DNA of 64,000 nt from Klebsormidium nitens (Eukaryota; Plantae; Klebsormidiophyceae): NCBI GenBank assembly GCA_000708835.1, contig DF236996.1, positions 154,397 to 218,396 on the forward strand, written 5' to 3'. Below are positions 9,198 through 63,653 of the stretch, one piece after another. Both the position numbers and the translations under genes were made by a program. Under the pieces are notes generated by a model. The model did not search any database, was not told where the DNA came from, and was given only the letters and a program-made list of their open reading frames with translations. Within the stretch, counting starts at the first letter, position 1. Each line of letters begins with the position of its first letter.

Positions 9198-12100
9198 CTA
9201 CCGAATAGGGTCCTCTCTTATCCGTCGTCTTTTTGCTGACGGCTTCTCTTCTAGTCGAGGGGGCTTTCCCTGCCTGACACTGACCCCCCCATTCACATTC
9301 CGCGACTTTTCCGCTGCCACGTCTCGCCGCTCCCTCTTCAGACCCTTCATTTTGGACAGCCCCAGCTTGTCCACCTGCGTCCGAGTGGATAGCTTATCAC
9401 TACTCCTGATTGTAGTGTATCTCAAGGGTCAACGGGAATCGACAGAAACTGACAAAGGTGCTTCGTGTAAGTTGCCGGTCACAGTGACTACCGAGAAAAG
9501 CATGACGACACGTCACACATGCAGGGCCGCAAATCCTGAAAAGCCGACTCGACTCGACATACCAAATAATGACGCAAGCGGTACACGGTTTGGTCACGCC
9601 CACCCAGCATACAAGCGAGATTCTAAGCCGACTCCAAAAGCCCACGATGAGAGTCCAGCAAAACCTCAAAGATCCAGATTTTTCTGCGTGGATACCAAAG
9701 CAGAGCGGCAAGGCTACCCCCCGGCCTAGACCTCCTGATAGGAACCAACCGAAGGCACCGTGCGCTTGCGCAAAGACCTCGCATCTCTCATATGGTTCAG
9801 AATGCACAGGACCGAAATGCAGTCGCACCATCAACGCGCGGTCAAAAGCATACGCACTTACCTCCTGCTTGGGCATGTAGATCCGCCCGACCTTGCCCGC
9901 CAAAGAGTCCATCGCCGTGTTCTTGACCTGCAGAGCGGCAATTCACACTCAGCGACAACGCCAATCAGCCCGCATTCTGTGACATGTTTTTCACGAGCGG
10001 ATAAAGATTTCGCAGGATGGAACCAGACTATTGACACATTGTTGGCATAAAAGCAAACTAGGGCGACTGAATGCTTGTGTTGTCTCGCTCTTTCCAGTTT
10101 CAAGAGTGCAGCGTTGAACGACTCCGATGATCCTTCCGCAAGTCCGACGACAGATTGCATCCGAAGTAAACCATGAAAGCAAGCGCAAAGCAACGCAGTT
10201 TCGAACCCTCCAGGCGACCACCGATATCAGACTGGTGCGTTTGACATCTCAGACTAACCCCCTGCTCGAGTAAACCGTTCCAACAGAATCTCGCCTAGAA
10301 AGCTGGCGTTCCTATTAGATTCAGGTCGGAAGCTGTACAGAACCAGCGTAAAATGCACGGAAGCGACCAGTCCCTGTACATTGGAAACATCATTCACTAG
10401 AACGGGGAACGTTATCATGCAAACCGCTCCGAGACGGCCGGGTGGCTGACGCACCTTCTTTTTGGTGGGCTTGGGCGCCATTTTGAGCGCTTCCCGACTG
10501 AGATCGTCAGACGGCGGCCGATGTCTCCGGACGGTCAGGTCCATGGAGGGGCCCATCTCTTCCAGCTCTATCCGCGGCACCTGTGCAAGACAGTCAGATT
10601 ATCCTCAGAACTTTCGAAGAGGACTGGTTTATCTAGTATTTCAAGAAAATGGAGTAATACACGCCGGAACAGTCCACCTTTAACTGATGGCATTGCTTTC
10701 GAGCAGATCTTGAGCAGATCAAATCTAATGTTCGTAGTCTTGAGGTCCATTTTCTGAAACAAACCTCATGTGCTTCTTGGCCGTTTTTGCAGTACAGTTG
10801 GGTGTGCTCGCAACGGTCTCCTCACTTGAATTGCTGGGGAACCGTCCACATGGTTAAAGATATAGAGCCACGCTTTGATCAACGTATGCGCCTGGGCTGC
10901 TTTATGCTCGGGTTGGCCTGATCATTGCGTTCACAACGCTACGACACCGTGAACGAGACCGAGCCAGTTAAGTTCGTTTTGAGTGGGTCGTATATACGAC
11001 TTGGCCCGATCCTTTTTACCCGGAGCACTCCCATAAGTCTGACCAAATAGGCGTTTCAATAAACATAAACAACTGACTGTAAAGCTCCAAGTTTCTTTCA
11101 CAAGAGCGAAACGTGGTCACGGCGGCTGCTTTTAGCAGACTGTCAGCTCAAATTCCTCGATTCTCGTGGGAAAAATCAGAAACTCGAACGCTGAGAGACT
11201 TACTGTACTACCCGACTTTTTCAGTTTGATGACGCAGTGACGTATCCGCACTTTGCCGGCCGCTGCTACGACCACGTAGACTCGATCCAGACCCTGCACG
11301 GCAAAAGAAGCAAAAGACATGCATTGAGCGTTGAGCGGTAGGGAAGCAACTCTGTCGAACGGATGGCTGACATGTCAGCGGTCAACAGAGTTGTTGGCAT
11401 AGAAGCGAAGCTGTGGTGTACCAGACCAGTCACGCCACTAATCAGTCGACGGATCTTGTAGAGAGGTCTTTGCAGAGCTTCTTTTGGAGAACCCAATTTG
11501 GCTACCTGCGGGCTCAGCGGATAAGGGACGAGCCTTGAAGTGGCTTTGTTTGAGTTCGATAACGGAAAACCCAGAACGTCGGTCCGCACTCGAGCATTAC
11601 GCGCAGATTGAATCAGAAGAAGAAGCTCAGCAGGTGCGGCAAAGCCTTATTATCCGCATGTCTGATTGACAAACCGAACCCGAGAATCACTAGATAGAAG
11701 AATGTCTTACCCTCAGATTTACTGTTTTGACGACCGTTCCCCGGAAGAAGTCTAGGAGGATGTTCTGCACGGAAGGGTGACGTCAAGCTGAGGACATGAA
11801 ACGTCAGCGTGACTCCATCTGACAGCAGTCCACACCGTACAGACCCTTCAGCAGGATCGGCAGGCAGTCGCAATATTCATTCCGACGATGAAAATCGAGT
11901 TACTGGGCAATTATCTCTAAGTCGTGGCATCAACTGCGATAGACGGCAGCTGAAAACAAGTTGATTAAGGCCCTAAGACAAGTCGCTTCATTTGGTCTCA
12001 ACTGCTCGCACAAAAGTAGTCGCATGATTCGTAAGCCAATCTATATTCCGCCACTCCAGTTCCCCCAGCTTCCTGCACTCATTCTTGGACTCAAATCGAC

Positions 12101-14870
12101 TGATCCAAACGGGGAACTCCTTCAAATACAGGCCGTCAGCAGATACTCGGGCATCGAAAACGGCCTCAGTCGGCTTCCAACAAAAAAGCAATTGGCGCCG
12201 GCTTACTTTCAGTAGCTTGTACTCGGGTTTCGTCTCGAACTCCTGCCCCGCGAACGCGAAGCACGGCTTTGAGCCCGCCATGACTTGCGACGCCACCTTT
12301 GGGAACTCCTTCAGGCTACGAAAGCGGTCCACCTGCGCACCGACGACAGCCGTTCAGAACCCGCCACGAGATAACCGGCCACGAGATCTCAGATGGATCG
12401 TCTGATCGGAACATTCGGTATTGACGGTGGGGAGAAGGGGCTGTCAGAACGGATCAAGGGAGAACGTGGACTCCCGAGCTGATATAAGAGACCCCTCCTA
12501 ACTATTACCCCTACAATCGACGGTCTGGATTTCCGAATTCATCCATTGTGACCGTCGATCAGAGTCGTCAGAATGGACAGGGGGTCCCTAGGAAGTCTGA
12601 CGGGAGTCCCTGTTCTCTTTCTGTCCGTTCTGGCAGTGAAGGTGGTGTCTGTAAGGCCCGAGAGCTATTTTTGACCCCACGACTTTATGAATCAGCCATA
12701 AGTTCAACTGGAACATCTGACCGTTGAAAACTGCATGGCAGGAAGCCCGGGTGTTCTTAATTACAGCCTCGGTCAGCTTTCGTTTACCCGTTTATGCTAC
12801 TGCCGTCAATTCATGGCATGACCTCGTCACTTTGAGTGACCCTACTCAGACTCTCAGAACAGTACAATTGTGCGCCTGATCTGAAGGAAGAAGTCCATCA
12901 CACCGTTTTTCCCAGAGCGCCGTGAAGGCAACATTCAACGATCAAGAATTACATCTGCCAAAGGTAGACGTAAAGCCCTAGACTGGTATACCCGCCAAGC
13001 TTATCAAGTTACCCGGTTCAGTGCGCAGATTACCCTTCGCCATGGACGATATGAAGGAAACTACTATCACGACTCAACATCGATGTTTGAAAGCTTGATC
13101 CGTCCGAGGGCTACCAAAGACGAACTTGAGTTGAATTCAGTAGTGTCCTGCTCGGAAAGTTTGAACCCCTGTGTGCTCTACAATGCACCATTTCTTCATA
13201 CCGGTTTGAGCCCCTTGAAAAGAATAACTCGTTTTGCAACCCCTTGACCTTCAAGCGTGAGGGCTGAAACATAGGCCCCGGGACCATGGAAATGCTTCAG
13301 ATGCAATTTTTCGTGCCCTTGGTTTCTATCCTCACCCCGAGCTCGACCATGTCGTAGAGATGGTGGTCGAACATCCTGCCAAGCACGAGGTTGTGCGGCC
13401 GCTTCTTGGAGTGGGAGGCAAACTGCAAACAGGCAATCAAAAACTGTCAATATAAGTTCCAGGATGTCACATAATGAGAGTGCACAAGCCCCTCCTTCAC
13501 TGATGTTGTGATGAACACCGGAAACAACCACAGCCATGTAATGTTTCTTTTGATACACAATTTGCAGCAGGGGCCCAAATCGAAACTGACAATTGAACTA
13601 ATTTCAAACTTTCTAAAGGCGGAAATCAAATCAAATCAATCGGGGGGCTGGCGGAAGGTTCGAAGGAGAAAACTACAAACCAGTGCGCCAGAAGCGCCCC
13701 TCACATGACTGGCATGATCACTGCTGAACCCCTCTAAGAAGTAGGCCAGTTACCACAACTCCATCGCGTATTCGCAAGGCTCATTGTCATTTGTAACCCT
13801 CGTCAAAACTGGATACCAACAAAGACTTATCGGAGATCCTCCAACGACAAATGCACAATCATTTTCAAGATCTCACACCAGATTGGATTCAACACTTTGC
13901 TTTTACCCACTCCAAGCCAGAATGCCAAAACCACAAAATATCACTAAAAATCGGAGGGCTGGCTAACATGCAGTCAACCAAGAGAAAGAGGAGCTATTTG
14001 AAAAGCTAATTGGGCCCCAGGAAATTGGAGCACTCACTGCGAACATACTGCAATCGTGTTGCTGCGCGAGCCGCTCAAGCGGTTGCTCCATGCCCCCCTC
14101 AAACGGCCGGATGTTCTCATTGTTGCGTGTCAGCTTTTTGGCCTGCTCTTCGAACCTTTTCAGCGTGTACAGCTCTGAAATCACGTTCTTGATTACAGCG
14201 CTGGTTTTACCCCCAAACAGCAGGAGTGCGTTCTTTGGGTTCTCATCCTGCAATTAGTGCGGCGCAATTGTGTCACTTTCGAGGACACTTGTGATTGAAC
14301 AAGCTGAAAAGTGCTCGTGTATCCGTCAGAGGGTATCAGCAATGAATCGGAAGCAGATGGGAAAGGACAACTGGTGGGGCATTCTCATTCTCCATGCACG
14401 GCTTGATTGGGGTCCTTCTGAGATTGGGGCAAACAAGGAGAAATGGAACTTCAGGGTCTGCACGTGGGTCCATTAAGCTGAAATAAAAGTGGTTGGTGGT
14501 AAACACTCGACATGTATTATGTAATGCCGCAAGATAGATGGCGAATGCAGTGAGCGGTAACGCTACTGGCTTGATGGTAATGGCAGGCCCAAACCTCTGA
14601 GACTATCCAAATTTTTCCAAGAGACAAGAGGGTAGGACCAAACCTCTACCACTGCTTCATCAAGAAGAAGAATGCTGACGGAGAGTCAGGTGCCACTCGG
14701 CCGTCCAAACCCTAATTCACCGCAAATTCATTAATGCCACTCTGATCAAGAAGTGCTTAACCCTATTCGTCAGAGCGACCAGGGGCGGCGACACTCACCA
14801 GCTTCGGAGCTCGCTTTGCGAGCACTCGCTCGCCCTTCTTCGTCTTGGGCTTCAGTATTTTAGTCGCCAT
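9198..14870 (-). CDS. RPF2: Ribosome production factor 2 homolog (Brix domain), 9 exons, about 335 aa
   Basis: Exons 14870-14799, 14247-14038, 13422-13336, 12332-12207, 11764-11711, 11293-11204, 10580-10455, 9927-9862, 9374-9198; all phase 0, GT-AG. Motifs: [85 protein letters not shown]. Confidence 0.95.
12441..12636. mobile_element. About 196-bp fold-back element (MITE-like or hairpin RNA) in RPF2 intron 3
   Basis: The left end ctgtcagaacggatcaagggagaacgtggactcccg pairs imperfectly with the right end cgggagtccctgttctctttctgtccgttctggcag. A perfect 10-bp inner stem joins atcgacggtc (12516-12525) and gaccgtcgat (12550-12559). Confidence 0.5.
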
Positions 14871-16026
14871 AATTTCTATCGCATCTGAATGCTGATTTGT
14901 ATGTTGGATAAACTTTCACCACCTTTGATTTGGGCTGCTCCTTTCCGGCAGATAAAGATGAAACGTTCGAATGTGACCACCTTAAAGCGCTCCACACTTG
15001 CAACCAACGCTAGCATAAGCTGCGCGCTGTCACGAAGTGTGAGAAATGAAAGCAAACTTGCAAGCCGGCCTGTTCACCTCAGCTGATTCAAAGCGGGGAA
15101 GCTGGGGGGCCTCGTCGTGCCGCTCTCACTTTCTCTCCTCAACCGCACGCTAGCCCTCAAGTTCGTAAGAGGGTTTCCAACGAGGCCCACGAGCAGCGTC
15201 GCTGGTGACCGTGCCTCGCGGGCGGCCTCGATGCGCGCTTCGACTGCGCGGCCGCGGACTCGCTCTCCCGCGGCCGCCTGCCGGGCGCGGACGGCGCGTC
15301 GGGTCTGGTTGGCTGCACGTGAATCCTACGCGTCTTTCGACGCAAAAAGAGCGACCTTGCTCCTGCCGTTGTAAACGCAAAAGGGGCCCACTCATGCACG
15401 AGCAGCAGGTATCAGCGTCAGCATCCTAGAGCACATCCACAGCTCATGACCCGCGCAGCTTCCGAATTGAGAGCCGCACGTTTAAACTTTCAGCGTCAGA
15501 AGGGGTGGAGAAATCTGATTGCTCTAATCCTATGATGCGACAACGCGCATGTCTGCGCGAGAGCCTGGCATCGAGCTCTTACTATGATCGAAAAGATATT
15601 GGAGATTTGTCTGGCAGAAAGGGAAGGTATAGGCTTTGACGTCAACTCAAGACGATAAGACGATGATCAAGAGTGCAAATGCTCTAAGATTGCATTTAAT
15701 AATCTCCACGCCAATCGGGCTAAAAGTCTTGACCGGCTCCCTGTTGACCAGACTCTGCTAGTTAAGACGAATCCAGGCAACTTGAGCTCAAGCAAGCTGC
15801 TTCCGGCAAAGCAACTCTTCCGAGCAACATCACTCGGCAAAGCACTTGGATCCACCTTCCATTCAAAGCGCCCATCGCTCACAAATCTCACCCTTCCCCT
15901 CCCCCCACGATTGACCTCAACGTCCGCACCCCCCTCGCGGGCACCGCCCGGTTGTGGCGCACGCACCACCCGGTCCTCGACCACACCATAAACCGACCCC
16001 CCCGAAAAAGTACCCCGGTCGAGCAT

Positions 16027-19000
16027 ATGGCGGGCCAAGACCAGCGCGCGGTGCTGATCCGCAAGTTCGACCAGGCGCACTACCTGGACTATCTAGAGGT
16101 GGGGAGGCGCCCCAAGCCGCAGCCCAAGGATGGCGAGGTGCTCATCCGCATGCTGGCCCGCCCCATCGATCCGGCAGGTGGGGGTTTGGGTTCTCAACGG
16201 AATGCTGGCGGAACTTGTGTCTTGTGTGGGTTTTGGTTTCATTTGTGGTGTTCTGACGGAATCTGTTCCTTGAGTGCTCATTCTGCGGAATTTACGGAGC
16301 TTGTGTCGAAGGGGGTGAGAATGTGGGACGAAAGAGTCTTTCTAGACAGATAGCGGACGGAATCCCATTTTGCAACAGAGAAGGTATTGCAAAGTGAACT
16401 TAGAAGCATTAGGGGATTTATGAATAATCCCCTCCGTTGTTGGAACGAAGGCGAATCATTCGTCTGGCAAGGATCTGATGCCAAAATCGTGCTTTCGTTT
16501 TTACGGCTCGCTTCTGGCATGTATCCTATATGTGAGGAATGGAGCTCGTTTAATCGAGGGAAGCTAGCATGGCATTCTCGCAGTTGGTGCATGCCTTGCT
16601 CACGGGAAGCTTTTCAGCATTAGCGCTTTTCTGACGTCTGCGAGATTCGACTTCCAGATGCTTACATGCTTCTTTCATTGCGAGCATTGCGTGCATGCAC
16701 TGCTTTTCGTGCTAAGTCAGTATATTTAAGTCCGAAATACACGCTCCTTTCTTGAGAAGGGCGAAGTGTTTTGGAAACTGCGCCCGTAAGAAAGTATGGG
16801 ATTCTTATATCGGATTCGACCTGCTCTGCGCGGCATTATTTTCACGAGCTCGTGCAACTGCTTTATCCAACGGACTCTCCCTTTGAATCTATCATCCCAC
16901 GTCGTCTTGCATTTTGATCAGCGCATCACTCTACCTTCAGATACTTTTCATTGACATTTCTCAATTGTGAGAGATGATTTTCCGTCTCTGTATCTTCTTT
17001 AGGCAGCTTCACGCTCAGGGGCATCGCTTCTGACAGTCCTCCTACAGTTTTCCCGCTTGTTTCTCACACGCTTTTGGCCTTTAGCATTTAGTGGTCCGAA
17101 AGTTTGTGGATTTGAACCTTCGAAGTGCAAGTGCAGACCCCTTTGTTCCTTAGAAAGTCCCTGTCCTGACGTCACTCCCTGCAATATACTCACATGCCAA
17201 AGCAAGGACCTTGAGTGTGCGTAAGTCTCTCAGACTCACCCGCAGACTATTTTTTGTAGGACAATAAAAAATTGTTGCATCGATCCTGAGAGGAGCATTC
17301 AGTTTCGAACACTTTATCCCGTCCAAACGCTCCTGTCTGCAGACACTGTCTCGCTCAGGGGCATCTAAGTTTGCTCCCCTGCACAAGTTTGCACGAACAT
17401 TTAACCTTTGTTTTTGCAGACGTTCTGTCTCTCAAGGGCATCTATCCTGGCTTTCGCCCGAGCGAGCTTCCGGCGGTACCGGGCCTGGAGGGCATGGGCA
17501 AGGTCGAGGAGGTGCGCACATCTCTATTTTCTTCCTTGTTTCCCTTATCTGCTTTTGATATTCTTTTCTAGGATTCCATTGCAGCCGCAGACGTCAGCAC
17601 TGCTATTTGACGGCGAATTCAGTATCTCTTTTGGGCTCCTCTTTGACTGAGCGGAACGACTCAACCAAAGCATCTCTCGTCGAGGCTCTGTGGACCCGTC
17701 TGAACGCAATTTTTATTCCCCCTGCTTTCTGTGCCATTTCGGCGTCAACTGGTTGTAAACCCAGGGGGATGTGAAGTGCAGATGTACGCATCATATGCAT
17801 AAGAAGGCGCATCGTGTCCGTTTGAGCGGATTTAGGCCGGCGGCACCGTTCGACTGAATATTGGACATATCTATTGAGACCCAATGACATTAAGGTCTGG
17901 GGTTGGCTCAAAAGGAAGCCAATCCTCACCACCTTACCGGATGGGGCTGGACGAGCTCTGGGTTTTCGATCCTGGGACTTCGCTATGTTTTCTTGAAGAC
18001 CAGGAGTGGACGTTTTCAGGCCCCCTTATCGATGGGGATTGACGTGGATATGTCCGGCTTGTCTGGAACTTCCTAATTCGCACCTTAAATCAATCTATTA
18101 CCGAATCCGTTGGATCGGCTAACCCGGTGCGGGTTCCTTAACGGAGCAAAAACTGTGCGCTTTTCAGCTAACCCGTGCGCTTTCAAATCGCCGCCGTCAA
18201 GGTCAAGACCGGGTTCTGCTCGAAGAATGTCTTGCCTTAAAAGCTGACAAGAAGTCCTGAAAATGGGTTGAGAAGAATACCCCGGTTCTATTACCCGTCC
18301 CGAAGATGGCTAATACGTCAACGTATCTGGGGGTTGGAAGCCGGGTTATGGTCAAACATGATTTTCCTAGGACACTGACTCCAAGCTCTGGAGTCAATTT
18401 GGACGGAGGTGCCAGGTTATCCTAACCCAGGTTCTGGGATCAGATCGAACGGTGCTAACCCGAATTACAATCCCCTTCCGCAGGTGGGTCATCACGTCAC
18501 CGCCCTCGAGGTTGGAGACCGGGTGGTGCCCCTTCTAGCGTCCGACTACGCCAAGCACGGCAACGGATCCTGGCAGGTGAGCAGCTCTCCGACGGACACT
18601 TGGCTCAAATTCAAGCCGTAAACTCCGTCCTCGTCGTAAGAGCAGTGAATTCGTCTAGAAACGATCACTCGCAGTGCGGCAACGGTCCCGGCAGGTGGGC
18701 AGCTCTCCGTTGGACACGTGGCTTAAACCTTCGGAGTCGATATCTCGCCCTTCGTACCGGCAAAGAAATATCCATTCAATAGGAATTGGAACTGTGTTTC
18801 TCTGTGCCGATGTCTAGGGATGAGAACGTACGCTGCGAAAACGAGCACTGCAATTGGCGGCCTCAATGTTGGTTTGACCGTTAAGGCAGAACACGAGACC
18901 GAAGGTTCTGACATCAACGGAAATATTCCGAGATTTCCTTCCGAGCGTTATCCATTCTATCAGGAGGTGTGAAGAATCTCACGCTAGCTTTGGCGCGCTA

Positions 19001-56307: not shown

Positions 56308-59300
56308 TCAAATCTGGGCATCGGAAGCGGACCCGCCAAACCTCGCCCTCCCGTACTCCCTAGGCGGCTCCTTCACCGGATGCTCGCTATAGTGGAGCCC
56401 GATCGACGCGAGCAAGGGGGGCGCGCGCGAGCTGTAAACGCGCACGCGCACTTTGTCGGTGACCACGGCCTCGGTGGTGTGAAGCCGCTTGTGCCCAATA
56501 GTCGTCCCTCCGACGAGCGTGGTCCAGGTGCGCGTGTGGAAGTCGAACACTTGGACGCAGTGCTTCGAGATCCGCTGGCCCAGCTGGATCGGCTCCTGGA
56601 AGCGGACGAAACTCATGGTACGCAAAGGAGATGATGAATGAAGGGAAAATTTGAAGGAGACATCACGCGTTTGGTAATCAAAATGTTTTGCGAGAGGGGC
56701 TGTTGTTCCTTGCTTGGGTTGACCACTGAAAGCGACTTGCTAAGTGTCTGACTGTCTCAGGGCTTGGATATGGATCTTGAGTCGAACAGAAGACCAGGAA
56801 ATTACCAGTGACTCGACGGGTGTGCTGAACCTTGAACGCTTTCGTACGCATTCCAGCGCCCGAAGTATGCCACCTCTCGGCTCAAATTATAAACCGTGTG
56901 CTTCTTAACGGCTCTTGTCCAATCCAGTCCCAACGCTTTCCGTTGAGATGCCGCAAGAGAAGGAAGGCAGCGGAGAAGAGGCTGATCGAGCAAGCAGGAG
57001 GGAAGGAGCCGAACTTTCAAAAAATGGATCTCAGGTGGAAATCAATGGCCGAAAGGTACACATTCCACACCAAGCACTTTCACTTACTCGTATATTAAGC
57101 TTCATATTTTGCTCTTTGATAATCATCATCATCGACCCTGAAAACCCTGTACCTGTAGCCTGACGACGTTGAACGTCTTGTTTGCCGTCATATGCAGCTC
57201 GATTGTTGCCTCCCGCACGTCATCTTCGGTCGCCCAGTACGTCCGGATGTCGTCCGTTAGCACCTGGGGGGGTCCAAATGGCCCGGAATCCGACCCCCCC
57301 CTGACGTTGCTGGCAGTCACGTTGCTGTCGGACGTTGCGTCAGTGGAGAAGATGTCGTCCAGCGCTTTGCGGAAGCCCCGGAGGGCGCTGACGTCAGCAT
57401 CGTCGAAGACGCCCGCTCTGGAGGAAAGGGGAGGATAAACAGCTCAGTGAATGTTTATTTTATCTTGTCTCGAGACGTTCTTGGGGGCGCCGATATTGAG
57501 ACTCCTGCATCTTGCCCCTCATGCAAACGAATCGTGCTCGTGCCTCTCCTCATTTCCCACTTCTTATCTTACCAAATTGTTTCCAAGGTGGAAGGTCGCT
57601 ATGGCGAGATACTCTCGTGACTTATCGAGAATGTCTGTAGCGCGTTCGATATTCTAGAGGGGTCCTCAATGCAGCTGCAACAAAGAGTCTTCGCAATATT
57701 TTGGAGGCATATCTAAGAGGTTCTCAGCGGAAAGACTGTGCTTCCGAGAAGACAATCATTTCAATCAGCAATATCGCCTCGAAGTTTCGTAGCAGCACCT
57801 TGTCCATGAGGTGAATGACGTGATATAAGAGCCTGCGGATCTCTTGCTTTTACGAAAATGACAACGGAATAGAGGTAAGGAACAAGCATGGAAGAAGAAA
57901 GAGAGAGAGGAGAGGATACCATCACACGTCTGTAACGCAGCAAGGAAAGGGGCGATGACTCTGAACCAGATCCGGCGTGAGAAGCGAACAAAGAGAAGAC
58001 TTCGGAAGCTCCCATTGGTAATTCAAATCAAATGCGTCGCATAGGCTGATGTGCCAGAGTTGCCTGGATGAATGGAATTGTCTGGCAATTTCTAACGTTG
58101 CGCAAGCGATCGGATCAGACTTCAAGCGCGTTGTTCACAAGCTTTGATGTGCGTGTTGTACCCACCAAAGGCTCCATCATTCTCCAAAGCAAATCCTCGC
58201 TCTACTGCAGTACCTGTTGGGAGGCACGTTCAGAATGAGATGCCCGTTCCGCCCAACAGAGGTGAAGTAGGTGCCGACGAGCACATCCACCGACTTGGGG
58301 GTTTCTTCCTGGTGGTAGAACCAACCGGGCCGAATCGAAGTGTCGCACTCGGGCGGAATGTAGTCGGGGCCCCCCTCCTCCCCCTCGGAGGCGTAGCTCG
58401 GGGTCGGGGGGTTAGCACCGATGTGGACCTGAGCGAGTTGGGGGGGGAGAAACTTGGGGACAGGGGGGGGGTGAAAGAAGGAAACATCAGGTGTTTGCGG
58501 GATTCGAAGCTTCGGAAGCGGCTGGGTGGGGGGACAACGAAAAATTGTCCAGGTCCCGAATCCGCAAGAAAAAGATTAGGGGGAAGGGGGGATGGGGAAT
58601 GTGGAATTCGGCTGGCCCAGAACGCTGTAAAACGTCACCTGCTCGAAAAAGAAAAGTCATCAGGAGGTTTCGAACCGAGGGTCTGTGGCGTTGCCACGTG
58701 TCACGCACCTATTGGGCGGCACGTTCAGGAGCATGTGACAGTTCCTGCCCACGGTTGAGAAGTAAATGCCGAGCAGGGTTTCGAGCGGTTTGGGCGCTTG
58801 ACCCGGGTGCCAAAACCAGGCGGGCCGGATCGACGTCTCGCACTCTGCGGGGGCGTAGTCCGGCTCCCCCTCCTGCCCGGTTGACAAATAACCGGCCACT
58901 GCAGAGCCGCCCCCAAGCTTGACCTGCGAGAAAAACGTGGCGCAAAGAATCTCTTTGAAAGCTTTTGTTAGAATTCTCGAGTTTTGTGCTTCAAGACAAA
59001 AACGATAGTCCGGGGGTTTTTCCTTGCCCCGTGACACATAATTGGCCACTGCAGAGCCGCCCCCGAGCTTGACTTGCGAGGGAAACACGGTGCAAAGAGA
59101 CCTGTTATGGGAGTTCAGGTTTGATGCTGTGTTTCGCAACAAACGGAAGTATTTGGAAGGTGGATGTCCTTGCAACTGTCTGAAAATGGGGGCGTAAATG
59201 TCCTGATTGTAGAGTCTGTGATCAGAGTCGTTGGTTCCCGCTGCATCCATACAAGGCAATATGAAACTATTGTGGGTATATTTCAGTTCGAGAATCAAGC

Positions 59301-62300
59301 TTTGAGCGGCTTTGAACACTATCAAAGCCAATCGCCGGAAATCTTTCGAACTGGGCATCGGAAACATCCTCAGCCAAGGACGATGTCACCTTTTACGATC
59401 CGCTGAAGCTCAGCGTCCAGCCGCTCGAACCCAAATACCAAAATAAATGTCGTTGCCAAACACGACCCCTCTTCTTGTCCTAGCAATAGACGACATTGGA
59501 GCTGAAAGAGACGACACCAAAAACACCACCGATGTATTGTAAGCGCTTGGACGGGATCTACAAAGCAGGAAGGCTTGGGAAAGCAGATCGATTTTGATGA
59601 AAATCTTTGCTTGCAGCTGCCGTGGGAGCAATCCGACTCAAGAAGAGTTGTGAAGGTGGGCGGGAGTAAAGAATCGCAAAAGAAGTCAAACCATGTCAAA
59701 ATTGGATTTGGCACCTGATTAAATGACTCAAGCGCTGTTCTATCCTAACTGCGGCCCTCAACGGGTCTTGCTGTTCCCACTTTCATCGCTACGCTGCTTC
59801 ACAAAGCTGGCCTCATTTTGCTTTAAGCAGACACACCTACTCATACGCGCTCTCTTTGAACGGACAGCCGAAGCTTGACAGGACGGCAGGAGTATCTGTC
59901 TTCAAAAAGAAGAGCTGCAAAATAGATCGTCAAAGCTATCAACAAAGGCGAGCCCAAAGCTACTTGTTCCCCTTCACCGAAACCAGCTGGACCGTTCTGC
60001 ATCCAAATGGCGCCATCGCAAGGCGCCATCACAATTCAGTACAGATGACAGAAAAACGGAATAATCTGCCAGGTGGCGGCTCACCTTCTTCCGGTCGATC
60101 GTGGCCCAGTTGGTCTCCCCAGCCCACCCGCCCTCGTTGCCCACCCACCGGACGTCCGGCCCGTTGTCCGAGAAAATCGCCGAGCCGGGCTGCAAAGAAA
60201 ACCCAGATGGGTGATACTCATCACTCTAGTTCGTTCAGTAGCCACCACATATTTTGCGCCGACATCAACACCTTTGCAAACTGGAGTAGGAATGTCTCGA
60301 GGTTCGCCCAATATATTTTCACATTGATGCAAGTGATAACGTGCCGATTTAGTGGGCAAACTGTCGAGCGTGCCACAGACTGGGCCTAGGATTATGTTCT
60401 AGGCGTCACTCTGTCATGACGAAGACACTCTGTCATGGCGAAGAGGTGTCATCTGATCGTTGCACCTAACCCGTGTAAAGCAACGAAAAGATCCGGCTCG
60501 AGTTCGAAGCGAGAAGATGGTTCAGAAACAGGAAAATCTTGATGGATCGGGTTTGCTGTTATTGAGACAGGTGGGACACGTGCCTGCAGCTGGTGGTTCA
60601 GCGTCATGATCTGGTCCCAGTGGTACTGCATCGCCTTGCCCCACGAGCCCTTGGCGCCGTCGTAGAAGTTGTACACAACCGGCCCGTAACTGTGTGCAGC
60701 AAAGCACACCCGAGCGTTACGTTGCTGATATCCGCTGTGCTAACTCTCGAATGAAGATTTCAAACCATGCAGTCAACAAAGGTATCGGACTCCAGTTCCA
60801 GCTCCGGACTTCGTTGAAGTACATCCGCATGACAAAAAGTGGAAACGTGCAGAAAGTTTCAGCTCCAGACTGCTTCTTAGGTTTCGACAATCCTTGTTGC
60901 GACGTTTGTACCATTAATAAATGACCCGAACGTTCAGAAACTTCGCAGCACTCCGTAACGTAAATCTGTCAAAACGTACCTTGCAGCCGGACGATGTATG
61001 GAAACACAAAAGCAAAAGAGACAACAATCAAGAACAAAAAAGATTCAAGAGCAAATGTACGTAATGACGTTGCACTCACTTTGACATCAGTTCTGTTAGC
61101 TGCCCCATGTAGTACTCGTTGTACAGTCGAGTGTCCCCATAGACGGAGCAGTTTTGATCCCATGGCGACAGGTAAATCCTGTAGAAACTAAGGTTCGTTA
61201 TGGCCCAGCTACCATTGGAGGTTTTAAACTCAATCCAAGTAGAGCGGTTGGAAAGTATAGATGCTTTGCAGAAAAGTTCGGCGTTTCGAATTTGCAGCCG
61301 CCATTTTGAGCGCCCTAAAAGCTACGCCTTCATTGCCGAACCTGAGTCCTGACCGACTTCGGAAGTCAACTTCCGCAGCCAGCACCTAACAGAACATTCT
61401 TAAGTATTAGTGTTCTCAAAAATCGACATCCTTGGTAGGTACTATGCAATACGCTCTGGAGAAAACGAATCGGGGATGCCAATTGTGGACTCAACCGTCT
61501 CGCCTTCTTGGCTGTTGAGCGGTCTGCTGAACTAACATGAGAGCAGGGAACTGATTGAGAAGGTGCCAAACAAACGAGAGCGCACTTGAGGACTTCATGC
61601 ATTAGCAATGAAGAAGCTTCGCGGCCAAGATTGAGGGGTGATCGTCATCTCGGACACGAAGACCACGAATGCAGAGACGCGCAAGAACACTGTTGCTGAA
61701 CGATTACACGAAACAAAGAACCTTTGACACTGCAGGCGCTCGCATGAAGAAGTGACGTAAGGCAATAAGTTGCCGGTGTAAATCAACGTATCTCGAAAAA
61801 CCAGAGCTTGAAACTTGCCCGAATCCAACCCCGACACTTCTGGTGGCATCGGCCACCTCACGGACGACGTCGCCCTTGCCATCTTTCCAGGGGCTGTTCT
61901 TCACAGAATGCTCCGTGTACTTGCTGGGCCAGGCGCAGAAGCCGTCATGATGCTGAAAGGACGAAGGAGAGGGCCAATTCACGACTTTGGCAATCAGTGG
62001 ATTCGAACCAACAATCCGAATGAAAGCCAGACGAATCAAGCATTGACAGATTGGATTGAACGAACAAAAGTATGACCATATCAACCGGGGTGTCCTATCA
62101 TGGTCGATCTAACATTGGATACTTTCAACTGACGAGTATCAGAGATGGAACAGTACTCTAAGCCTAATTGTGCCTTTCTGCTTGCTCAGAAAACGGTTGT
62201 CTTGTGGGTTGAACTATAGATGCCTTGAACTCCCTCTCTGCGGCTAGGAACTGGTTGCTTAAATGAGCTTGAGCAGATGATTCGTGGGGCTGAAGGTTTG

Positions 62301-63653
62301 GAGCATGACTATTAAGACTTTCTACATTCTATTGATGAGAAGAAGAAGCTCATTTACATGTCCATTTGTGAATCATTTATAGAAAAAGAAGCAGATGATT
62401 CTAGCTCTGCTTACTTTGGCAACAATCACCAGGAACTTGAACCCCGTCTCCTTGGCCACACTAGCCCATTGAGTGGCATTGAGCCCCTCAGGGTTGAACA
62501 GCTCGGGGCTCTCATGGCCGTCTCCCCACTGACAGAAGCAACAGGGTATGAGAAAGAGTGAATTTCTTGGTTTTCTTCTGACAATTGCATGTTTTGATGG
62601 CAAGTGCGTTACATGGCTGGATGCCCTGGGGTCACTTTCGAATTTCACTGGCAATATCTTCTGGTAGACAGCGCTGACAAACAAGCACTTGATGAGGAAC
62701 CTATTCCAGCCAGAGTTTGCATGGCTTCTTCCTCGTAAGGTTACAATTGGTAAGGTCTTACCTCCTTGTCAGTATACGTGTTCATCCCGTAGTGCAGGAA
62801 CATGGAAAGCTCTCCTTGCTGCCAAGCCAGCTGAAGTGGACACAAATGCCATTCAGCTAAGCTGGCCACACTTGTTTCACAAGACATGTTTTCTCTCAAC
62901 CTTGCTTTTCTGAAGGAGTGACTAAGAGGCAGGATTGCAAACATTTCAAGATATGATAGAGAAGATTCTCACTTTGCTCTGCTGTTGGAGTCTGAAGCAC
63001 CCTCTTTTTTGAACAGAGTGCCTTAGTCTACTTTCAATCCAGCACAGTGCATATCAATTCTTGGAAAGAAGAAGGTGGCTCTCTAAGGTGCAAACGTCAT
63101 TCTTGCAACTTTTTGCAACTATGTTGGCCAAGACATGTTCTACTTGGTGCCTTGATTGATACTGTCTTTTGCCCAGTGTTCTTCTTGAAGGAAAAAGCAA
63201 GGTCAATACATTGTCAACCGTCATACACGTTTGGCTAGGTTGCGAAAGACTCACCTGCCGTGCATTTGGAATAGGCATCAATGGTGCAGGCGGGAAGGGG
63301 GCCACATCATTCTCTGGTCCTGCCAACCAAGCTCCAAAGCTTTCCGTAATCCTTTGCACCACCTCTGTTAATTGGTGCAGAAGTGGCCATGATTGGAAAC
63401 CAGCTATTTCACTAACTCTTGCTGCCTTTTCTTCCTCTGCTTTCCTGAAGCTAGCCTCCCAAGAAGTGACCACAGCAGGCTGCTTTGATTGAGGGAAGGG
63501 GTTCCTCAGCTTCAATGTGGAACTCAGTGCATCACCAAGGACACTTCTGGCTTCCACAGATGATACATTGAGGAGGAAGGCTGTGACTATGCAGATTGTG
63601 AAAAGTAAGGAGCTGGTCGAAAGACCCAGATACTTGTGCATCTTGCCCGACAT
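56308..63653 (-). CDS. FUC1: GH29 alpha-L-fucosidase (plant FUC1 / GH29-B type) with signal peptide and C-terminal beta-sandwich, about 597 aa per isoform
   Basis: Exons 63653-63255, 62830-62762, 62528-62415, 61952-61819 (GC donor), 61178-61080, 60689-60584 (GC donor), 60189-60085, [58923-58709 or 58428-58214], 57417-57153, 56595-56308. Motifs: [38 protein letters not shown] (nucleophile Asp), PDVRWVGNE (acid/base Glu), SIRPx[32 protein letters not shown]. Confidence 0.95.
58214..58428 (-). CDS. Fucosidase alternative exon 8b (215 nt)
   Basis: ccccaactcgctcag|GTC...AAC AG|GTACTG; peptide [72 protein letters not shown]. Confidence 0.88.
58709..58923 (-). CDS. Fucosidase alternative exon 8a (215 nt)
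   Basis: ttttctcgcag|GTC...AAT AG|GTGCGT; peptide [72 protein letters not shown]. Confidence 0.88.
58990..59085 (-). repeat. Echo of the exon 8a acceptor plus first 23 codons or so
   Basis: cgcaag tc aag ctc ggg ggc ggc tct gca gtg gcc... reads [23 protein letters not shown], versus the real [23 protein letters not shown]. Confidence 0.9.

Follow-up and report, generated by a model that had tools for sequence, protein, structure and literature searches.

Sequence evidence for an old tandem duplication of exon 8, with strongly skewed use of its two copies, in a predicted GH29-B alpha-L-fucosidase gene of Klebsormidium nitens

The stretch of DNA analysed here (64,000 nucleotides (nt) of contig DF236996.1 from Klebsormidium nitens, called the window in the following) contains on its minus strand a gene that is predicted to encode a plant-type alpha-1,3/4-fucosidase of the GH29-B type, and in which exon 8 is present as two tandem copies, 8a and 8b. 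Comparisons within the genome and with the GH29-B family indicate that this is a real and old tandem exon duplication and that both copies have been under selection as coding sequence. At the transcript level, 8b is the default copy and 8a a minor alternative exon, and the main RNAs that contain 8a are non-productive. We see about an even chance that the two copies have been kept as alternatives that are used very unequally; 8a would then provide a low-level or conditional isoform with a modified +2' subsite. The initial annotation of this stretch had described the two exons as a mutually exclusive pair that swaps an active-site motif, so that one gene would make two fucosidases of different specificity. 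A mutually exclusive pair making two enzymes is plausible.

The gene consists of 10 exon positions, with exon 8 duplicated, according to a model based on direct reading of the sequence and on tblastn with homologues. In the assembled gene model the coding sequence comprises 597 amino acids with either copy of exon 8. The protein begins with what resembles a signal peptide, contains a TIM-barrel catalytic domain and ends with an F5/8 type C-like domain. RNA contigs confirm the junctions 6/7, 7/8b, 8b/9 and 9/10. The features that matter for the exon pair are the following:

56308..63653, minus strand: GH29-B alpha-L-fucosidase gene as predicted from tblastn with homologues, Pfam searches on single exons, and the assembled open reading frame with its splice sites.
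60085..60189, minus strand: exon 7, 105 nt, ending in phase 0 and encoding RWVGNE; the joints 60085/58428 and 60085/58923 are present in RNA.
58709..58923, minus strand: exon 8a, 215 nt, acceptor ...ttctcgcag/GTCAAG, donor CAATAG/gtgcgt; the minor alternative copy.
58429..58708, minus strand: intron between 8a and 8b, 280 nt, removed in some transcripts (joint 58426/58707, "skips 280").
58214..58428, minus strand: exon 8b, 215 nt, acceptor ...ctcgctcag/GTCCAC, donor CAACAG/gtactg; the default copy.
57153..57417, minus strand: exon 9, 265 nt; the joint 57417/58214 is present in all 8 RNA runs and 57417/58709 in run X13.
58230..58232, minus strand: premature TGA that ends the reading frame of transcripts with 8a and 8b together.

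The two exons are adjacent, homologous, of equal length and of equal phase (phase 0 in, phase 2 out), and they can replace each other in frame. The direct reading confirmed what the initial annotation had said about their architecture, including the AG/GT splice sites, the 280-nt spacing and the 54% amino-acid identity: 38 of the 71 full codons encode the same residue in an alignment without gaps, with 0 stops and 0 indels in either copy. The first base of exon 9 completes the split Arg codon (AG+A) of whichever exon 8 precedes it. Since 215 is not a multiple of three, exactly one copy is needed for an in-frame transcript. As the initial annotation had also stated, the reading frame from exon 7 into exon 9 is kept with either exon. 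Inclusion of both leads to the TGA at 58232-58230 (the first stop, at codon 480, 281 nt upstream of junction 9/10), and skipping of both leads to a first stop at codon 350.

The differences between the copies are distributed as expected for coding sequence under constraint. The nucleotide identity of 8a and 8b is 63%. Of the 80 differences in the 71 full codons, 25 affect codon position 1, 13 position 2 and 42 position 3 (chi-square p = 3e-4). The comparison of replacement and silent changes suggested by the initial annotation gave a proportion of nonsynonymous differences (pN) of 0.275 and a proportion of synonymous differences (pS) of 0.68, and supports protein-level selection on both copies. 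When the same 80 differences were placed at random in 20,000 simulations, none of them reached 38 identical residues, the maximum being 36. The GC content of third codon positions (GC3) is 0.78 in 8a, which is like that of the other exons, and 0.80 in 8b; the GC content of the introns is 0.47-0.56. Against a GH29-B profile built from 128 other segments, 8a scores 97.3 bits and 8b 101.0 bits, whereas simulated neutral copies scored by the same profile reach 44±10 bits after 40 substitutions and 7±7 bits after 80.

Departures from the family consensus that are unique to one copy occur in 8 columns of 8a and in 4 columns of 8b, an asymmetry that is not significant. Four of those in 8a affect columns that are conserved to at least 80%, and all four are conservative (D to E, G to A, S to T, L to M). 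Moreover, 8a and 8b have the rare states Y23, T30, G52 and H63 in common, which shows them to be sister copies with an origin in this lineage. Had 8a drifted neutrally since the duplication, its neutral distance would be limited by its divergence at codon position 2 (at most 18%), and the saturated third positions call for a far larger distance. Exon 8a must therefore have been constrained for most of this time. The conservation of 8a at the protein level further suggests that a 7-8a-9 isoform is translated, or was translated until recently.

The use of the two copies was followed in contigs from 8 RNA runs of 7 studies, which were placed on positions 57050-60300. The 7-8b-9 form is dominant in all 8 runs. 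Junction 8b/9 is present in 8 of 8 runs and junction 7/8b in 6 of 8, and single contigs cover exons 9, 8b and 7 in X10, X19 and X2. Both splice sites of 8a are recognised in RNA as well. The commonest 8a junction is 8a/8b, by which the 280-nt intron is removed and the reading frame is broken. It occurs in X1 (depth 42), in X4 (depth 25.7) and in X11, where it lies on a contig of 2,610 nt that retains the whole intron between exons 7 and 8a. In X4, 8a has a unitig of its own with a depth of 43.5; in the same run 8b reaches 142.6 and the flanking introns 12-19. The intron between exons 7 and 8a (58924-60084) is retained at about 10-20% of the exon depth in all deep runs, and in most runs this intron is covered 2-3 times more than the one between 8b and exon 9. 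The junction 7/9 was absent from the contigs of the 8 runs. Runs labelled as a second organism revealed no sequence difference and therefore hold no comparative information.

The four junctions that the initial annotation had expected for a mutually exclusive pair (7/8b, 8b/9, 7/8a and 8a/9) thus all exist. Its picture of a mutually exclusive pair is nevertheless not supported by the RNA in the form in which it was given: the use of the copies is unbalanced, with 8b as the main form in 8 of 8 runs, 7/8a and 8a/9 were each found in a single run, and the frame-breaking 8a/8b occurs in 3 runs.

As a separate observation on the same RNA data, contigs from X4 and X10 leave exon 7 at 60121 and 60152 and run on as loose ends of unrelated sequence, 28 and 140 nt long. 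These ends could stem from an alternative junction, from chimeric contigs or from another locus.

The assignment to GH29-B, which the initial annotation had proposed, is borne out by Pfam and by structure matches. PF01120 (Alpha_L_fucos) matches exons 3, 4, 8a and 8b; the single-exon scores lie below the whole-protein cut-off, except for that of exon 4 (31 bits). An F5/8 type C Pfam match was also found at the level of single exons. For exons 7, 8a and 8b alike, the best structure matches are the GH29-B enzymes SpGH29, BT2192 and AfcB. The exons alone match GH29-B crystal structures with E-values of 3e-15 (8b) and 2e-13 (8a), so that the similarity of both copies is far above chance. Homologues could be aligned across all exons with 42-52% identity.

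Alignment with SpGH29 allows the residues of the swapped exon to be related to known functions. The RWVGNE of exon 7 places its Trp on W211, the galactose-stacking Trp, and its Glu on E215, the acid/base Glu, which lies on loop 6 four residues past that Trp in SpGH29 (PMC10154630). Within exon 8, position 29 corresponds to D257 and position 36 to W264, the fucose-stacking Trp of loop 7. D257 forms a hydrogen bond with galactose in the +2' subsite (PMC10154630) and has been described as an "assisting" Asp that is linked to the acid/base residue and the Trp (PMC11100010). The published mutants of D257 are Asn, with an approximately ten-fold loss of rate, and Leu and Ala, with an approximately hundred-fold loss; the set does not include Glu (PMC11100010). 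The suggestion of the initial annotation that the conserved galactose-binding Asp lies in this motif was therefore correct, and the two 13-residue motifs read as it had given them. Exon 8 does carry an active-site motif, with the assisting Asp and the stacking Trp; the catalytic acid/base residue is located outside the swapped exon, in exon 7.

The motif of 8b contains the canonical Asp (D29, codon 58344-58342) and the Trp (W36). In 8a, a Glu (codon 58839-58837) takes the place of the assisting Asp, the Trp is kept, and the Gly directly before the Trp is replaced by Ala. Among 127 homologues, the assisting position is Asp in about 94%, Asn in 7 and Glu in 1, and the position before the Trp is Gly in 124 and Ala in 0. 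The combination of assisting Asp and loop-7 Trp is thus found in the 8b isoform and is altered in the 8a isoform, and the initial annotation was right in calling 8b the canonical and 8a the deviating copy.

Some further properties of the gene may be mentioned here. Introns 4 and 6 appear to be of the GC-AG type (61817-61818 and 60582-60583, minus strand; donors GG/gcaagt and CAG/gcacgt). For intron 6 the RNA junction 6/7 has been found, and within its ambiguity of 5 nt the GC donor is the only one that pairs with an AG acceptor; for intron 4 the assignment follows from homology and reading frame only. Exon 1 (63255-63653, minus strand) encodes a start that resembles a signal peptide and then, ahead of the catalytic domain, about 100 residues for which no homologue matched. 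The aligned bacterial and plant relatives lack this N-terminal extension.

How could the two copies be kept apart? Steric exclusion is ruled out, because the intron between 8a and 8b is 280 nt long. A competing RNA structure was also considered, but a scan for inverted repeats gave only weak arms (at most 26 nt, with at most 77% complementarity) and no convincing docking or selector pairing. With a steric block excluded and without convincing docking/selector complementarity, exclusivity would have to come from the reading frame. According to the explanation that we prefer, an old tandem duplication of exon 8 would have produced two alternative exons able to replace each other, and their exclusivity would be set by the reading frame together with nonsense-mediated decay (NMD) and not by the splicing machinery. 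A transcript with 8a and 8b, having its stop 281 nt before the last junction, would be expected to be a target of NMD. Exon 8b would be the default and yield the canonical enzyme. Exon 8a would be weakly used and, under the sampled conditions, mostly be joined to 8b in non-productive RNA or be contained in partly spliced RNA. The putative 7-8a-9 isoform would carry a Glu at the assisting position in the galactose (+2') subsite and a changed loop 7, and it is probably made at a low level or in conditions outside those sampled.

Several observations weigh against this explanation. Junction 7/8a was found in X4 only (1 of 8 runs, depth 9.3). Junction 8a/9 is likewise limited to one of the 8 runs (X13, depth 5.5), where its contig runs into the upstream intron. 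A complete 7-8a-9 mRNA is missing among the contigs of the 8 runs, and in X19, the shallowest run, the depth of 8a is zero and that of 8b is 19.6. All these data are assembler contigs, which indicate presence and not absence, lose rare forms and give rough depths only. Moreover, the Asp (94% conserved) and the Gly (96% conserved), at the two positions of the exon that vary least in the family, are both replaced in 8a, which could be a first sign of decay.

It is also conceivable that 8a now acts mainly as a "poison" cassette exon, whose inclusion before 8b leads to a premature stop and to decay of the transcript and thereby tunes the output of fucosidase, so that its coding conservation would be the legacy of an earlier alternative role. 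This is unlikely on the whole, but it has to be taken seriously. It would account for 8a/8b being the commonest 8a junction in X1, X4 and X11, for the depth of the 8a unitig in X4, which lies between those of the flanking introns and of 8b, for the higher retention of the intron before 8a compared with the intron past 8b, and for the TGA being more than 50 nt upstream of the last junction. However, a purely regulatory exon needs no constraint at the level of codons, and yet position 2 is the most conserved in 8a, followed by position 1 and position 3. Its high GC3 and its length of exactly 215 nt have been kept as well, and the family profile scores it on a par with 8b. Furthermore, the steady-state amount of 8a/8b RNA is no proof of regulation.

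The same skew could be read in another way, namely that 8a is a relic, a formerly functional alternative exon that has recently fallen into disuse, is starting to decay and has its splice sites picked up as splicing noise. The main mRNA carries 8b alone in every run, 8a is missing from the shallowest of them, and four highly conserved positions are changed in 8a compared with at most one in 8b, all of which agrees with such a history. Nevertheless, we consider it distinctly improbable, since 8a is without a stop, an indel or a radical replacement, scores 97 bits with the profile compared with 101 for 8b, and has two splice sites that are intact and in use; four deviations that are all conservative would be unlikely for unfiltered mutations (about 1e-3 by a rough estimate). 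There is very little to be said for the idea that 8a was copied in, or refreshed by gene conversion, with exon 8 of another GH29 gene of this genome as the source, so that it would look selected without ever serving the present gene. The 64-kb window contains no second GH29 gene, and in the 4 runs searched with a likeness threshold of 90% no RNA contig of 90-99% identity was found on 8a or 8b, which indicates that there is no expressed near-copy. It is also far simpler to assume a local tandem duplication whose borders coincide with those of the exon.

The initial annotation had in addition regarded the pair as the possible mature product of an "echo process". A partial copy of the edge of 8a fits this idea, although it is the only echo that was confirmed:

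59021..59098, minus strand: partial echo, 150 nt upstream of 8a, with 81% identity (repeat search, family D1, and alignment).

It contains the last approximately 25-37 nt of the intron and the first approximately 53-69 nt of exon 8a. The acceptor AG has become AA (shifted by 1 nt), and the truncated copy lacks a donor. None of the contigs of the 8 runs has a junction at its site. The echo is younger than the 8a/8b pair and can serve as an internal neutral control: at a divergence of 19% it has lost its acceptor and its coding sense, and its residues change freely. Older echo units upstream of 59021-59098 were detected neither by Tandem Repeats Finder (TRF) nor by alignment in the 150-nt register.

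A stop-free frame of 235 codons (58663-59367, minus strand), 148 of them intronic, extends in the frame of 8a across the upstream intron, the echo and 8a. Such a frame could be a side effect of in-frame duplication at a spacing of 150 nt, or it may be due to chance. A protein database search with this 235-amino-acid frame, scored on 8a only, gave one candidate and no match, and in the same database no 8a-containing product was found in the range of 129-411 amino acids.

The broadest version of the proposal goes beyond the exon pair itself. It states that one gene of a green-lineage alga makes two GH29-B fucosidases by exon switching policed by the reading frame, the default one with Asp and a conditional one with Glu and a changed loop 7 and hence an altered acceptor or linkage preference, and that the pair is the matured product of a genome-wide process by which splice junctions and exons are duplicated again and again. 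We regard this combined proposal as tentative and, taken as a whole, as rather doubtful.

A profile search of the whole library with 8a and 8b together found 1,282 relatives, the best of which have 55-60% identity to either exon. This search gave no close relative and no protein of the organism itself, and full-length identity was at most 52%. The nearest named eukaryotic relatives are from Closterium and land plants. In a metagenome scan, 8a gave no match, and 8b gave full-exon matches of at most 57% and longer partial matches of at most 65% identity on bacterial-looking contigs; neither scan found a related alga. The nearest named algal homologue, from Closterium, has a single equivalent of exon 8 and no tandem copy. 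At approximately 45% identity, however, this homologue is too remote for an estimate of the duplication's age.

The Closterium locus has peculiarities of its own. Its annotated product of 1,234 amino acids (contig L001 of Closterium sp., 10001-17220) consists of a part resembling an mRNA cap methyltransferase and a GH29 domain, and several GH29 copies are located on the same contig. The annotated product is probably a merged gene model within a tandem family.

For animals there is ample documentation of mutually exclusive exons that derive from tandem duplication, whereas reports from the plant lineage are rare. The case presented here is unusual with respect to the lineage, to the enzyme family, to the swap affecting a residue that has been put forward as the reason why GH29-B enzymes require a branching galactose, and to double inclusion dominating the transcripts that contain 8a. 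If the pair is indeed used as we propose, a single gene that naturally switches between Asp and Glu would provide a ready-made test of the galactose subsite. Should both exon switching and such a genome-wide process turn out to be true, mutually exclusive exons would be unusually frequent in this genome for a relative of plants. The case also illustrates the limit of inference from sequence only, as a strong signature of selection stands against sparse transcript support for a productive use of 8a. Because of this sparse support, similar candidate pairs need RNA checks at the level of single junctions before they are counted as isoform switches.

Compared with the GH29-B enzymes that gave the best structure matches for exons 7, 8a and 8b (SpGH29, PDB 6OR4/6ORF/6ORG; BiAfcB, 3UES/3MO4; BT2192, 3EYP; and the plant FUC1 type, Kalanchoe homologue P0003), the gene has the HHDGF His pair, the DGAKG region, RWVGNE, ExDxSIRPGW and the C-terminal F5/8 type C-like domain in common with them. 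The nucleophile Asp is presumably located in the DGAKG region. What sets the gene apart from these relatives are the Glu (1 of 127 homologues) and the Ala (0 of 127) of 8a, as well as the long N-terminal extension of about 130 amino acids.

With poison exons, that is, alternative splicing coupled to NMD (AS-NMD), 8a shares the premature stop well upstream of the last junction that results from its inclusion before 8b; RNA of this form is present in a visible proportion in 3 runs. Unlike in poison exons, where this is not expected, 8a keeps a homologous reading frame that conforms to the family.

FGFR2 with its exons IIIb and IIIc is an example of mutually exclusive exons in animals. In animal genes with such tandem-duplicated exons, incompatibility of the reading frame together with NMD clears transcripts that include both copies or skip both (reviewed in PMC9013439, PMC9741552 and PMC8373072). 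The pair described here resembles them in that two homologous exons stand side by side, have an equal length that is not a multiple of three and are productive only when a single one is included; moreover, the duplication is old, both copies are under purifying selection, and the swap affects a functional site. However, the pair also differs from its animal counterparts. It belongs to a plant-type gene of the green lineage, where such pairs have rarely been described, neither a competing RNA structure nor a steric block was found for it, and its 7-8a-9 isoform is putative. Its use is strongly skewed towards one copy, and the double inclusion that the reading frame would reject is the commonest form in which 8a occurs.

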